The translations under genes and the position numbers were made by a program. The notes beneath the pieces are model-generated. The model did no database searches, was not told the origin of the DNA, and saw nothing but the letters and a program-made list of their open reading frames with translations. A DNA stretch of 64,000 bases, taken from sequence record MK250017.1; one strand, 5' to 3'. This document shows positions 9,796-59,596 of this stretch, piece by piece (within the stretch, counting starts at the first letter, position 1; every line of letters begins with the position of its first letter).

Positions 9796-11034
9796 TTATT
9801 GTTTATTAATCCATTCTTTTACTTCATTAATATTCCAAAATTCTATATAATTCAAATTATTCTACTATGATATATTCCTTTTTTTCAAATCTAATATAGT
9901 CCATGTATAAATAATATTATCATATTGTGACTTCTTACCATTTTTATGTGCATTAGAATTTTCTGCTTTTTCTTTTAAGTTATTCAGCTCATTTAAATCA
10001 TATTCATTATTTTCATTAAATGGATGATAATGATGATAATGAGATCCGTTATATTCAATATATAAATCTAATGATGGTATATAAAAATCACAATTAAATG
10101 GATACAATTCTGATTTATATTGTCTAATACAATCTGAATATTTTTCTTTTAATAAATCAAAACATACATCTTCTTGATATGATATATTAAATGAATTATT
10201 TAATAATTTTGTATTATAAATTTTTTTCTATATTTCATTACTACTTAATATAGATGAAATTAAATTTTTATAGTATTGTGTCTANNNNNNNNNNNNNNNN
10301 NNNNNCTTTTCTAAACATGTATTTTTTATTTTATCTTTTACATATTTAAGTTGACCAATATTTACGATACTATTAATATCATCTTCATTAGAAGCATATT
10401 TTTTAATACATGTATCTAATGACTAATTTCGAAATTTTTGAACTTTAAATACAGAATCAACCCCATACTTTTCTAAACATGCTTTATAAGTTTTTTCTAT
10501 TTTTTCAGGAATCTAACCTGTATACTCAACACCATATTTTTGTAAACATGTTTCTTTTGATTTTTGTTTAAATATTTCAGATTTTAAAGGGGATGTTACT
10601 CCATATCTTTGTAAACATGTTTCTCTTGCTTTAATTCTATTAGAATAATGTTCATCTCCATATTTTAATAAACATGTTTCTCTTATTTTATTATTAATCT
10701 CTTGCTTTTTATCTACATCACTATATATGTCTTTTAATACTTTTTTAACTGTTATACCATCTAACATATTTGCATGTTCTTTACAACATGTTTTATTAAA
10801 TAATTGATTCTTTTTACCATTCAAAAATTTAACAGGTTTTCCACAAATAACACATACAGGGCGAACCTCTATATTATACTGTATTCTCTTAATTGTTTCT
10901 CTTAATGACTATGAATCAGTATAGCGATTATCTAAATATTCCTTATACCCCTCAGAAATATTAGTTAATCGCTATACATTTATATGTCCATTAGATTTAA
11001 TAAAATAATCTAATATAATCTAATCTGTTACCAT
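9796..11034 (-). CDS. Homing-endonuclease-like PD-(D/E)XK (Vsr/DUF559-type) protein, TAG=Gln, spans an N-gap
   Basis: One frame from ATG 11034 to TAA 9796 through at least 9 TAG and a 21-N gap. N-terminal CVICG...TCC, repeated ETCLxKYGV units, C-terminal CDFYIPSLDLYIEYNG..H and NLNYIEFWN. Confidence 0.8.
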
Positions 11035-16728: not shown

Positions 16729-17166
16729 AATTACTGGTAATTTGAGAATGATAGAATATATAGATTTTTGATTAGTGAAATTTTGATTAGTTAATATTAT
16801 TTAGAATTTGTATAAATTAACATAAAAATAATATTGATTATCAATCAGTTATAAATTATTTTTTAACATTTATTAAAAATATTTAGAAAAATGTAGACTT
16901 TTTCTTAAAACNNNNNNNNNNNNNNNNNNNNNNNNNNNNNNNTTGAGATAGATATTATACATAATATGTAAAAAAATTAAATATATTTTTTAATAATTTA
17001 ATAAGGTAAGCCTTTCGGAAATGTAAATATATTTTGAATATGGTATAGAAATATTTTTTATTTTTATATCATATTTTTATTTTATAGTATATAAAACATT
17101 ATTAATAATTATTAGTAAAATATATGATAAAGTTTTATATTTACTTATTATAATTACTTTAATTTG

Positions 17167-55420: not shown

Positions 55421-55508
55421 GTAGAATGATAGAATTTGATTCGCACAAATTTTCCTGTCTTTGAGATCTCTACACAGATTTTATCGATTATTAAACTACT
55501 ATCTCTAC
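55421..55508 (-). ncRNA. tRNA-like cloverleaf with abnormal anticodon arm
   Basis: Acceptor GTAGA-GATAG / CTATC-(AT)-TCTAC; TA linker; D-arm GTTT..AAAT; stem CTGT/ACAG around a 15-nt loop; T-arm ATTTG-TGCGAAT-CAAAT. Confidence 0.45.
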
Positions 55509-55527
55509 TTCTGTTTGCAAACCATTG

Positions 55528-55599
55528 TGCTCTATACAGGGATCGAACCCGTGATCTGGAAGTTTAAAATTTCCTGCTGTACCGCTTAGCTAATAGAGC
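55528..55599 (-). tRNA. tRNA with UUA anticodon (ochre/amber suppressor type)
   Basis: GCTCTAT/ATAGAGC acceptor, A73, D-arm GCT..AGC with GG, anticodon arm GGAAA-TTTTAAA-CTTCC (anticodon TTA, A31xC39 mismatch), T-arm ACGGG-TTCGATC-CCTGT. CCA not encoded. Confidence 0.88.
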
Positions 55600-55675
55600 A
55601 ATTAAAAATAATCATTACTTCTAATAAAATAATGTAATGATTATTTTATTTTTAAAAATTAAACACTGTTTATTA

Positions 55676-55855
55676 TTACTTTGTCTTTGAAGCCTCAATA
55701 GACTCCTTACGGAATGTCTTAAGCAACTTCTCAATTGCAAGAGAAGCCTTACGTGCACGCTGACCAGCTGCCTTATTACCCTTATCTGTCTGTGCAGTTG
55801 CATCTGCCTGGAAAGCTGCAAATGCCTCATTAATACTTGTCAAAATCTCATTCAT
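55676..55855 (-). CDS. Histone-H1-like (Hc1-type, Bacteroidota family) protein, 59 aa
   Basis: MNEILTSINEAFAAFQADATAQTDKGNKAAGQRARKASLAIEKLLKTFRKESIEASKTK contains the KGNKAAG.RARK.S signature. Ends TAATAATAA. The track shows the wrong frame here. Confidence 0.85.
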   Translation of the reverse strand: MNEILTSINEAFAAFQADATAQTDKGNKAAGQRARKASLAIEKLLKTFRKESIEASKTK

Positions 55856-55871
55856 AATTGTTTTCTTAAAA

Positions 55872-56079
55872 TTAATTTTTATTTATGATTTTATTATTCT
55901 CCCATGTTTTGCTCCAATTTGCATCTGTTTTTAAATGTTGAAAACGAACATATTTGCCTACATTCTTATCAAAATCATTATAATTAAAACTATCTGCATT
56001 TCGTACTACAAAACCTTCAACTTCTTGTGATTTATGTAAATCACAATAATCAGAGAATGCTTTAATAATATTCTTAATA
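55872..56079 (-). pseudogene. Split RNA ligase, piece 3 (C-terminal)
   Basis: (N)IKNIIKAF...EVEGFVVRNADSF...KNVGKYVRFQHLKTDANW: motifs IV and V, then TAA. Confidence 0.88.
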
Positions 56080-57566
56080 TTAAATAATTCACTTATAACA
56101 TATATAACTTTAATATTATATATGACATATATATGATTTGTCTGAAGTGAATCTAGAAAACTACAGATTAAACTAATCTATAGAAAGTCTATATTTAATT
56201 TTAGACTTTTTGAAGAAGTAATATAGTTCAATCAAATCCTTGTATGTAGGTTGTAAATTAAATTCTTCCAACGACTCAAGATACAACTTATTAAACATAC
56301 TCAAATTCGGTCTTATTATATTCTTTTTAATTTCTTTTGTTTTACTTATATATTGATTATAAAACTCATAACCACGCCTACCTATTTCTATTGATGCTAA
56401 TATCATATCAGGTAAATTTAATGAACGATATAGAAAATTACCAATAAAACTTGAATATTCTGGTTTAACTTTTAATAACTTAATATTATGAATATTACAA
56501 CGTTTAGTTAAATTATTCACAAATGTTGTTCTACACCATGAATTATTAACCAATTTATTAAAATATACACCTAAATCTTTATCTGAAGTTTTGATATTTA
56601 AATTCTCTATAGAAATAAGTTGACATTTATAATATATAGATTTATTAATTATATTCTTTACAATTTGTAAAGTCTCATAATTTCTCTTATCTGAAATATA
56701 TTTTCTTTCATTTGAATCAGATGAATATCCTTTATTCTTTAAATTAAAATCTTTATCATTCAATTTTTTAATTGAATAAATACCTGATTTGATAACATCA
56801 AATTCATTTTCAGATTTCCAATCAACAATAGACCATCCTATATAATTAGGATTTAAATCCAAAGATAGTACTCTATTTTTTATAAATTTAGTTTCATAAT
56901 TATAAACATCATTTTCTTCAAATATCACATAAATATATTCTAAATCTAATTTATATGCAATCTTTATTTCTTTTCTTTCTTGTTTCTAATATAGTTTAGA
57001 TAATATCTACTTTCTTTTATTTAATCCAATTAACCATAAATTTATTTTTGTATGTTTATTTGGTTTAAATATAATATTTTCTAAATCTTGTTCTATGTGA
57101 AATTTTCTATTTCCTTTAACTGATTTATTAACTATTTCACCTATTGAATATAAAGCCGATAATCTTTTCTACTTAAACTATTCTTTTGAAATATTGTTCT
57201 TTAATCTCTAAAAATAATTCTTCTTACTGCCAAATATAATTTTCTATTTCTTTGGTATATCATAGAAAGAACATTGAATAAACCAACTATCTAACAAATA
57301 TATATTGTTTAATGTTTTTATTTGTTGTTTTATATCTTTCTAAGATTTACCTTCCTATACTCTATTGTATACAAAATGCTGTACAGAACTATACTATTTC
57401 ATATAATTCCGTATAATATCTAATGATTGTTCATCCGTTCGATATTTAATCTTTAATACTTGCATTTTTAATTGTATATAATATTATATTCTTTTATTAT
57501 TTATCTGAATAATTTTAAAAAATAATAAATTCTTATAAAATATAAATTATAAGGTATTATTATATT
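56080..57566 (-). mobile_element. TnpB-only element B (about 1,487 bp) inserted in the RNA ligase gene
   Basis: Lies exactly between ligase codons ...GTG TAT AA | T ATT AAG. Left flank TATAA, right end TTTAA, subterminal hairpin CTTATAA-N8-TTATAAG. No tnpA. Confidence 0.82.
56116..57465 (-). CDS. tnpB: TnpB-like RuvC nuclease lacking the Zn finger, 449 aa, 11 TAG=Gln
   Basis: RuvC-I VLSLDLNP, RuvC-II ISIENL, VKPEYSSFIGN...LPDMILASIEIGRRG (RuvC-III). The track shows only the TAG-free middle. Confidence 0.78.
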
Positions 57567-57768
57567 TTATACACGCCTCTGTATATTTCGTCTACTATTT
57601 TGATATTATTTTTTTCACAAAATGAAACTGTTTTATCCCATGATAAACAATTATTTTTATCATCGTATATAGAAAAACATTGAAACAATTCATTCACATT
57701 TTTAAATGTATATGATATAGAATGTTTTGCCTGCATGTTTTCACCACATACTCGATAACCGTCAGGAA
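57567..57768 (-). pseudogene. Split RNA ligase, piece 2 (middle)
   Basis: (I)PDGYRVCGENMQAKHSISY...FQCFSIYD...CLSWDKT...IYRGVY: motifs III and IIIa. Not in the track. Confidence 0.88.
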
Positions 57769-59137
57769 TTAAATAACAGTATGTTAAAACTTGAACAAAT
57801 TTGAACTTTGCTCTTTATTAACTTCTTGCTTCACTCTATCACTACTTTTTAGGTTCATTTCTGAACGGTCATCCATAGTTGGATAGTCCACAAGCTTAAA
57901 TTCGGGTGTACTGCACCCTATTATTCTTAAACCTTCATCAAGTATATTTAGTGCTGCATTGTAATCTCTATTAATAAGTTTACCACAATTAGGACAGGTC
58001 CATTCTCTATCACTCAATTTTAATTTCTTAAAAATATAACCACAACAGTTACATGTTTTACTTGATGGATAAAATCTATCTACAAATACTATCTTTCTGT
58101 TATACCATCTTGCTTTATACTCTAATATTCTTCGGAATTCACCAAAATTCATTTCTAAAATACTTTCAGCAAGTTTATGGTTCTTAACCATACCTTTCAC
58201 ATTTAAGTCTTCCATACATATAACTTGGTTTTCGTCAATGAGTGAATTACTTACATAGTGAAGATAGTATTGTTTTCTATCATTTATTGTTTTATATACT
58301 TTAGCAAGTTTAATTCTTGCTTTATTTCTGTTGTTACTTCCTTTTTGTTTTCTTGAAAGTTGTTTTTGAAGTTTATTTAACTTAATTATCTCATTCTTTT
58401 TAAAATGTAAGTTATTGAATACTTCTCCTTCTGATGTGATGATAAAATCTTTTACACCAAGGTCAATACCTACACAATTATCACTATCTTGTAATCCTTT
58501 ATGTATTAAATCACCATCAACCAATATTGACAAATAATATTCACCGCAAGGTAGTTTAGATAATGTTGCTTGTCTAATATTATCATGATGTTTTTGTAAA
58601 TATTGTACATATTTTTTATTACATCTGAACTTAATATTCTTTATATTAGCAAGAGATAACTAATATGTTGTATAATCATTCTTTCTTGAGATGGTACCGA
58701 TTTCAAATCTACAGCTTTGTTTGTTATCATGTTTTGATTTGAATTTTGGATACCCTGTATGTTGTTTAAAGAAACGTTTATATGCATCTAACATATCCAT
58801 TATAGATTGTTTAAGAACTTTTGTATTCTGTTCTCTGAGCCATATAAAATTATCATCTTTCAATAGTTCATGATGAAACCAATAACTGAGTGTAGATCTG
58901 TTTTCAGAAATATTATGTTCTTTATATTGATTTATTTTTCGAGCAAGTGTTTGATTATATACAAAACGACAACAACCAAGCAACTTATTAATTTGTGTTG
59001 CTTGTTCCATATTTGGGTATAATCTTATTTTTATTGCTCTTAACATAATTTATTTTTTTGTTTATTTCTTTTTTCTCTTATTTATTTAAATAATTTTTAT
59101 AAAAATGTACAATATTGTTCAAATTATTTATTTACTA
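57769..59137 (-). mobile_element. TnpB-only element A (about 1,369 bp) inserted in the RNA ligase gene
   Basis: Lies between ligase codons TTA A | TT CCT. An 11-bp direct repeat TGTTATTTAAT (59137-59147 and 57768-57778) makes the exact border slide. No tnpA. Confidence 0.85.
57784..59046 (-). CDS. tnpB: IS605-type TnpB nuclease, 420 aa, one TAG=Gln
   Basis: N-terminal KIRLYPN.EQ...GCCRFVYN, GIDLGVK (D), CMEDLNV (E), SSKTCNCCG/CPNCG Zn finger, NRDYNAALNI (D). Track ORFs 58660..59046 and 57784..58533 join across one TAG. Confidence 0.92.
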
Positions 59138-59390
59138 TTAAATAACACCAATTTTGAATTATATATTTAACTTTTGATTGTCATGGATATGAACTTCCAT
59201 CTATAGATCTTGCATGAATATATCCGTCATTATATACAGTACAATTTTCACCATCCATTTTAACAGTAACTACAACTTCTTTAAACTTATTAAAATGCTC
59301 ATCAGATTTAAGTTTCTTATCATCATCTGTCGCATTAGGTGAGCATGGAAGATGAAATGTACGCGGATATTTTATATAAGTATTATCCAT
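59138..59390 (-). pseudogene. Split RNA ligase, piece 1 (N-terminal), TGA at codon 70
   Basis: KYPRTFHLP.S...TDDDK...VTVKMDGEN (motif I)...HARSIDG. The frame continues past TGA as QSKVKYIIQNWCYL up to the element A border. Confidence 0.88.
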
Positions 59391-59392
59391 AA

Positions 59393-59596
59393 TTAATTAA
59401 ATATAACTTCACACATATCAACATTTACAATTGAATCATCATCTTCAAAAATAAATGCATCTTTATATGTAGGATCATTTTCATTTTTAATTATACCTAT
59501 AGCTTTATTTACTTTCTTACAAGATTTAAATGGTTTTCCAGATTTCTTTTTTACTTTAAAAGGAAATTCTAAAAGTACACTACTATTTGTTGCCAT
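59393..59596 (-). CDS. Hypothetical protein, 67 aa
   Basis: ATG..TAA, TAnnTTTG promoter 44 nt upstream, probably co-transcribed with the split ligase. Confidence 0.7.
   Translation of the reverse strand: MATNSSVLLEFPFKVKKKSGKPFKSCKKVNKAIGIIKNENDPTYKDAFIFEDDDSIVNVDMCEVIFN

Follow-up and report, generated by a model that had tools for sequence, protein, structure and literature searches.

A TnpB-encoding element assigned to the IS607 type in a Lak megaphage RNA ligase gene, and the 11-bp repeat at its borders

An 11-bp direct repeat that brackets a tnpB gene in phage DNA probably reflects the presence of a tnpA-less IS607-type element (element A) at a G-TG-T site in an RNA ligase gene, the repeat being composed of the TGT core of the family and of the element's own tip, which is identical to the target by a one-off match. 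The DNA analysed was a stretch of 64,000 nucleotides from sequence record MK250017.1 (the window). The explanation of the repeat would then be largely an ordinary one, IS607-type junction anatomy combined with a one-off identity between end and target. As a result, the initial annotation of the element is corrected from Y1-type to serine-recombinase-type, and its right border is moved by 8 nt. The features are listed in Table 1.

Table 1. Positions of the features in the window, with the basis of each assignment.
Feature	Position	Strand	Description and basis
Element A	57776..59144	minus	1369 bp, shared TGT assigned to right end; difference between filled and empty alleles, and ends from 27 insertions
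Left end (LE)	59047..59144	minus	About 98 nt, with TTGAAC/TTGTAC motif; alignment with other tnpA-less copies
tnpB	57784..59046	minus	420 codons + TAA; in-frame TAG at 58660-58662, read as sense
Predicted omega RNA scaffold	57776..57925	minus	Last ~150 nt, overlapping the final ~140 nt of tnpB; RNAalifold
Predicted guide-matching flank	57756..57775	minus	Starts TATTTAATTCC; from right-end boundary and IS607 TnpB biology (10.1101/2023.11.20.567912)
Left 11-mer copy	59137..59147	minus	TGT (core TG 59147-59146, preceded by G at 59148) + left-end tip TATTTAAT
Right 11-mer copy	57768..57778	minus	Last 3 nt of right end, TGT (57778-57776) + 8 nt of ligase target (57775-57768)
RNA ligase pseudogene, N-terminal part	59145..59390	minus	Pfam RNA_ligase; TGG>TGA at 59181-59183; intact orthologues in L110 and L111
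RNA ligase pseudogene, middle	57555..57775	minus	Pfam RNA_ligase profile positions 65-130; alignment to L111
RNA ligase pseudogene, C-terminal part	55872..56082	minus	98% identical to L111 1710-1920
Element B	56083..57554	minus	1472 bp; ORF 56116-57465, 449 aa, 11 TAG codons

The 11-mer, TGTTATTTAAT on the minus strand and ATTAAATAACA on the plus strand, is present in two exact copies on either side of tnpB in direct orientation, just as the initial annotation had described. The start-to-start spacing is 1369, and there is no third copy in the window. The number of copies is by itself not significant. Shuffling the window gave a mean of 0.82 exact copies, with at least two in 19 of 100 shuffles, and the same 1.5 kb holds a second exact 11-nt repeat (D6) by chance. 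The 11-mer is meaningful because of its position. Element A lies within an RNA ligase gene (Pfam RNA_ligase, PF09414), and in two related contigs of Lak type, L110 and L111 (553,716 bp in the case of L111), the gene is uninterrupted, with 220 codons and an intact 220-aa product. When the window was aligned with these contigs, the alignment ran to 59137, through the left copy, and resumed from 57778, with the right copy, the two parts sharing exactly 11 nt of the uninterrupted allele, where each contig has a single 11-mer. The empty site reads ...AATTGG TGTTATTTAAT TCCTGATGG... in L111, whereas L110 instead has TGTTATTTGAT; its core context is G-TG-T. The filled allele exceeds the empty one by exactly 1369 bp. 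An independent contig, from run X16 (a pig gut RNA library, examined as assembled contigs), skips 57768-59136 and joins 57767 to 59137, the 11 letters fitting both sides.

Concerning the source of the DNA, the window belongs to Prevotella phage Lak-A1 (MK250015-18), which the segment 57500-59420 matched at 100% identity; for Lak-A2 and Lak-C1 the identity was 99.7%. The window has a G+C content of 25%. Reading TAG as sense raised the coverage of the whole window by long ORFs from 61% to 91%, with ORFs of up to 2,500 codons, while reading TGA as sense did not lengthen ORFs. Lak-A1 reads TAG as a sense codon, and TAG was translated as a residue, Q standing in for it, wherever recoding is seen in the genome; runs of N at 10285-10305 and 16912-16942 were kept as they stand. 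TAG codons are many in the large ORFs at approximately 9.8-53 kb, and few or absent in the 1-9.6 kb region. A tRNA gene at 55527-55599 on the minus strand (Rfam, 57.7 bits) has the anticodon TTA according to ARAGORN. This corresponds to an ochre-type suppressor that by wobble could also read TAG; the codon recoded here is TAG, not TAA. As for element A, its tnpB contains one TAG codon, versus 8-17 in the older TnpB paralogues of Lak genomes, which suggests that the element arrived recently from a source using the standard code.

The ends of the element were delimited by comparison with other copies. In 68 distinct copies, similarity at the right end extends as far as ATACTGT (...TTTTAAYATACTGT) and the flanks are random beyond, with no base preference at positions 1-12 past the right end in the downstream alignments. 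In X16 contigs with a near-identical right end, the match likewise stops at 57776/57775 and continues into unrelated DNA. These comparisons place the right border of element A at 57776 and not at 57768, the position given initially. The distance of about 15 nt from the tnpB stop to the border, proposed at the same time, is correct for 57768, but only 8 nt separate the stop codon (57784-57786) from the end at 57776.

At the left end, mapped by profile, 27 independent insertions have G-TG-T, and their right ends have C-TG-T, two of the insertions carrying a variant core. Following G-TG-T, the left end continues with (N)NTTAAY, that is, two variable bases and TTAAY, irrespective of the target. 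The central dinucleotide co-varies at the two ends, with GAGT/CAGT (AG/AG) in L010 and GGGT/CGGT (GG/GG) in L164; the ends of L151 were read by eye as C-AG-A/C-AG-T. From these ends and their co-variation, TGT is the shared recombination core and target motif. At the right junction, the base after the core is C in some copies, which fits with this base being derived from the target. The pattern is the one described for IS607, whose 2-bp core is common to the two ends and the target, and which moves through a circular intermediate (PMC6188088; 10.1101/2023.11.20.567912). Element A also contains a subterminal inverted motif (59104-59125 versus 57788-57809), of the TTGAAC type in the left end and present twice in the right end, a candidate for the short repeated motifs to which TnpA binds in IS607.

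TnpB relatives at 69-81% identity are plentiful in viral and metagenome contigs from gut and rumen, and relatives with 73-79% TnpB identity harbour a tnpA with an HTH and a serine recombinase domain between the same ends. In L009 and L010 this is a 205-codon gene with MerR-HTH and Resolvase domains (Pfam), situated between the left end and tnpB. Full-length tnpA was present at 14 of 87 family loci and remnants at about 8. On the other hand, Y1_Tnp (PF01797), sought in five records with family copies, was not detected in any of them, while the controls matched. Taking into account the serine recombinase in the relatives and the lack of a detected Y1 transposase, we assign the family to the IS607 type, and element A is one of its many members that lack tnpA. 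Derivatives without tnpA measure 1.32-1.37 kb in this family, and element A is a deletion derivative like L011 and L012.

The initial annotation had instead regarded element A as an IS200/IS605 element with a Y1 transposase, placed 3' of a TTTAA motif that would be the TAM, with a guide beginning at TTCCTGACGGTT. The closest PDB relative of the TnpB is indeed the ISDra2 TnpB, which belongs to IS200/IS605. The relatives of element A, however, contain a serine recombinase tnpA and no Y1 was found (0 of 5 records), all 27 insertions have G-TG-T at the left flank (with a variant of the core in two of them) and do not share a TTTAA, and the right end stops at 57776. The flanks of the other copies lack the repeat and have a different motif, so that TTTAA as TAM is refuted by the criterion set initially, and a Y1-type origin has next to no chance of being correct. 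Homology-directed copying, which the initial annotation had offered as an alternative, may have taken place.

A tnpA of the element A family was not found in Lak-A1, whose sole serine recombinase (36% identical) belongs to the family of element B described below. For this reason, we infer integration of element A by TnpA from its relatives. A donor copy was not found in scans of viral, metagenome and genome collections, which gave nothing above 81% except the same insertion. Alongside the uninterrupted ligase site, run X16 contains a near-identical right end of the element joined to other flanks, and the 5' end of tnpB (59050) joined to a different upstream sequence, which points to sister copies at other loci.

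The TnpBs closest to that of element A, those of L115 and L175 (80-81%), begin 9 nt after a host ORF, counted from its stop to the tnpB ATG (1450-1500), and a left end is not recognisable in these loci. The natural 3' end of the host ORF has 12 nt identical to the left-end tip of element A. We considered from these loci that a TTT tip might be ancestral, and dropped the idea, as the 12 identical bases are the natural 3' end of the host ORF (compare L277). L118, L152 and L016 have two tandem modules resembling the right end and omega RNA downstream of tnpB, with two profile matches each. An additional family copy, L094 (Lak-C1 210208-211335), has a TnpB identity of 83%; inside its right end, about 38 nt resemble the uninterrupted site of Lak-A1 (L273) and Lak-B2 (L274), and the canonical 12-nt right-end tip follows. 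This structure indicates a junction rearranged with microhomologies. With target-like DNA in the right end and too complex a history, L094 was rejected as a second pair of filled and empty alleles.

The tnpB product contains the Pfam domains HTH_OrfB_IS605, OrfB_IS605 and Cas12f1-like_TNB. It aligned over its full length with the ISDra2 TnpB (8exa; E=4e-60), including the D-E-D residues of the split RuvC and the zinc finger (CxxC...CxxC), and the alignment places the motifs GIDLG, MEDLN and NRDYNAA. The nuclease is apparently active. An RNAalifold analysis of 28 diverse right ends gave a structure of 20 pairs, of which 18 show compensatory double changes, and an independent run on 55 right ends agreed with it. 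The scaffold lies almost wholly within tnpB, in agreement with the earlier proposal that the omega RNA overlaps the ORF. In 55500-59500 the tRNA was the sole Rfam match (E up to 1), and none of the known omega RNA families was matched. Since the right end is at 57776, the guide is predicted, by analogy with tested TnpBs, to start at 57775, in the ligase flank (TATTTAATTCCTGACGG...), 7 nt upstream of the start suggested initially. The empty alleles differ from this predicted guide by one base in L111 and two in L110. The TAM of IS607 TnpB includes the core (PMC6188088; 10.1101/2023.11.20.567912), and for element A a TAM of about GTGT is predicted, at 59148-59145 of the rejoined site. With this guide and TAM, the element could cleave ligase alleles that have no insertion and be copied into them.

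We then consider the 11 bases themselves. The element A family would move by its serine recombinase through a circular double-stranded intermediate, and element A would have integrated at G-TG-T in the RNA ligase gene of an ancestor of Lak-A and Lak-C, killing the gene. As strand exchange would take place on the 2-bp core common to the joined ends of the element and the target, TG(T) would result at both junctions, and the first three bases of the repeat can be attributed to this mechanism of the family. The other eight are the left-end tip on one side and the target on the other. The left TATTTAAT is homologous to tips found at unrelated targets, among them TATTAAT (L135, L139), ACTTAAT (L012, L125) and AATTAAC, and the right TATTTAAT constitutes the ligase codons Y-L-I, present in the uninterrupted alleles. 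The initial idea of mimicry between end and target suits eight of the 11 bases.

With the left eight bases being the element's own tip and the right eight pre-existing ligase DNA, the repeat would not represent a target duplication. One copy in the uninterrupted site and two in the filled site is certainly what staggered cleavage with a true 11-bp target-site duplication would give. The left copy, however, is homologous to the left-end tips of copies whose targets are unrelated and in which nothing beyond TGT is duplicated, and the family is without an associated enzyme that makes such duplications. We therefore regard a target-site duplication as extremely improbable.

The repeat is unusual among elements of this kind, as had been claimed. 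In the 26 other insertions, identity extends only 0-3 nt past TGT (0 nt in 17, 1 nt in 6 and 3 nt in 2), as in random sequence. When the best repeat starting from the right-end TGT was determined at 56 loci, the distribution equalled that of permuted flanks with the exception of element A; permuted flanks gave 11 nt in about 0.04% of trials and at least 9 nt in 0.1%. Among the 2,356 TGT sites of the window, two are followed by TATTTAAT, and both are the junctions of element A. Of the GTGT/TGT sites, about 1-2% are no more than a single edit away from TATTAAT, the family tip. An 8-bp identity by pure chance is improbable, at about 2e-4 per TGT site and 2-6% family-wise. In addition, the tip of element A has one T more than 26 of 26 other left ends, and it is this T that makes the match perfect; L191 likewise has a tip with a 1-nt insertion. 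The extra T hints that more than coincidence may be at work. Three readings of the 8-bp identity remain: coincidence, perhaps with a slip in the T run; capture of the circle at a site resembling its end; and overwriting of the tip by recipient sequence in homology-directed repair after TnpB cleavage.

In the second of these, a circle with TGTTATTTAAT at the joint of its right and left ends would have been captured at the ligase gene through the 11-bp identity, either because the recombinase prefers a tip-like half-site or because short-homology recombination of phage or host made the crossover. The anatomy is exactly that of a single crossover in a shared 11-bp segment; with 11 bp common to the circle junction and the target, integration would look Campbell-type. 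Chance identities of this length are rare, and other rearrangements of the microhomology type occur at element ends in Lak genomes. On the other hand, tip and target are no more similar in the 26 other insertions than expected by chance, so that any preference would be weak or exceptional. Published IS607 targets are unrelated beyond the core (PMC6188088), and for homologous recombination a segment of 11 bp is very short. Homology-favoured capture is, in our view, rather unlikely.

The third possibility concerns the spread of the element after its arrival. The element may have entered at GTGT with an ordinary tip, TATTAAT. When TnpB then triggered the repair of an empty allele with a filled one as template, the 3' end of the recipient (...TGTTATTTAAT) would have annealed to the similar tip and primed copying, so that target sequence replaced the tip and the match became perfect. 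Compared with the nearest tips (L135, L139), that of element A has one extra T, exactly as in the target; the TnpB looks intact, the guide has 1-2 mismatches to the empty alleles, and homing by IS607 TnpB has been documented (10.1101/2023.11.20.567912; PMC13565253). A filled allele with an unconverted tip was not found, however, and 9 of 9 filled alleles examined were identical at both junctions. The extra T would be explained equally well by a 1-nt slip in the T run or by a natural variant of the tip, as in L191, and the difference between AGTAAAT and AGTTAAAT is left unexplained. We consider such a scar of homing quite improbable. The sister copy in X16 offers a distinction, as its tip at the other locus should be TGTTATTTAAT if the sequence is intrinsic to the element, and TGTTATTAAT if overwriting at the ligase site is true.

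Put more broadly, the 11-bp identity might be the footprint of homology-dependent spread, with the tip rewritten during TnpB homing between co-infecting Lak genomes or the circle steered to a matching site. We hold this to be doubtful, although, if true, it would make the naturally occurring filled and empty alleles a record of RNA-guided homing in an uncultivated megaphage. The reading that we prefer is the one given at the outset, a TGT core with a one-off match between tip and target.

The ligase gene decayed after the insertion. The change TGG>TGA at 59181-59183 occurs only in Lak-A1, and another filled lineage (L001/L007/L008/L113) has CAA>TAA; the nonsense mutations are independent between the filled lineages and the empty alleles are intact. 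Translation of the in-frame TGA as W was rejected, since other alleles have TGG and recoding of TGA gives no longer ORFs. The ligase gene is absent from the Lak-B genomes, hence there is no empty site in them.

The same gene was interrupted by element B. Element A without element B is found in G001/L108/L109, both are present in Lak-A1 and Lak-C1, and neither in L110 and L111; element B is a second, unrelated and later insertion in the same dead ligase gene. Its junction has only about 3 nt (TAA) in common with the target. The initial annotation had element B ending in TTATTTAA, which is literally true of the right border, but this sequence is half element and half ligase flank, and its last letters belong to the flank. 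The 449-aa ORF gave no Pfam, PHROG or PDB sequence match; RuvC-like motifs were noted by eye. A paralogue in Lak-A1, 84% identical, directly follows a gene for a 201-aa HTH and serine recombinase protein with seven TAG codons (L102:1327-3333). The ORF of element B may encode the partner of an IS607-type transposase, in the form of a TnpB-like protein that is very divergent.

These results document, in TAG-recoded megaphages, an IS607-type family whose core is TG instead of GG, along with natural filled and empty alleles and a host gene interrupted twice. They provide testable predictions, namely that the TAM is about GTGT and that the guide starts at 57775. For the mining of TnpB systems, a repeat at IS607-type junctions can be read as the core plus possible similarity between end and target, and not as a target duplication or a TAM. 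The eight extra identical bases raise a question on target choice or homing repair that would be cheap to address experimentally.

When compared with known systems, the element A family resembles IS607, IS1535 and the IS607-type IStron of C. botulinum, in which an HTH and serine recombinase tnpA is located upstream of tnpB, as in the full-length relatives. The likeness to the IS607 family further includes the absence of terminal inverted repeats and of target duplication, a dinucleotide common to the two junctions and the target, short subterminal motifs, a TnpB with a predicted guide RNA at the right end, and the frequent occurrence of tnpA-less derivatives. Known members use GG or TGGG, with ends in GG and a G-rich target, whereas the element A family uses TG in G-TG-T and C-TG-T; this is a variant of the core and not of the mechanism. 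Other differences are the host, a TAG-recoded megaphage with 25% G+C, the absence of tnpA from the element A copy, and the 11-bp junction identity, confined to this copy. The TnpB of ISDra2 (IS200/IS605; PDB 8exa, 8h1j) is similar in the overlap between the omega RNA scaffold, predicted in element A, and the 3' end of its ORF. ISDra2, however, relies on a Y1 transposase and single-stranded DNA with the TAM TTGAT, in contrast to the serine recombinase and predicted TAM of about GTGT here, and the family shares a motif at both junctions, unlike IS200/IS605 elements of the Y1 type, which insert 3' of a fixed 4-5 nt motif outside the element and have subterminal hairpins. The IS607 TnpB of ISFba1 (PDB 8iaz; PMC11061315) is a full-length homologue of the element A TnpB (E=2e-50). 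In ISFba1 the guide RNA is located outside the ORF and belongs to RAGATH-18 (Rfam), whereas the predicted element A scaffold lies inside the ORF and has no Rfam match, and the ISFba1 TAM is AGGAG/GAGGG versus the predicted GTGT or so of element A. Finally, as in Campbell-type integration at att sites, direct repeats flank the insert, and the empty site and the circle junction each have a single copy of the repeated sequence; the family, however, needs only a core of 2-3 bp, and the 11 bp do not form a conserved att site.
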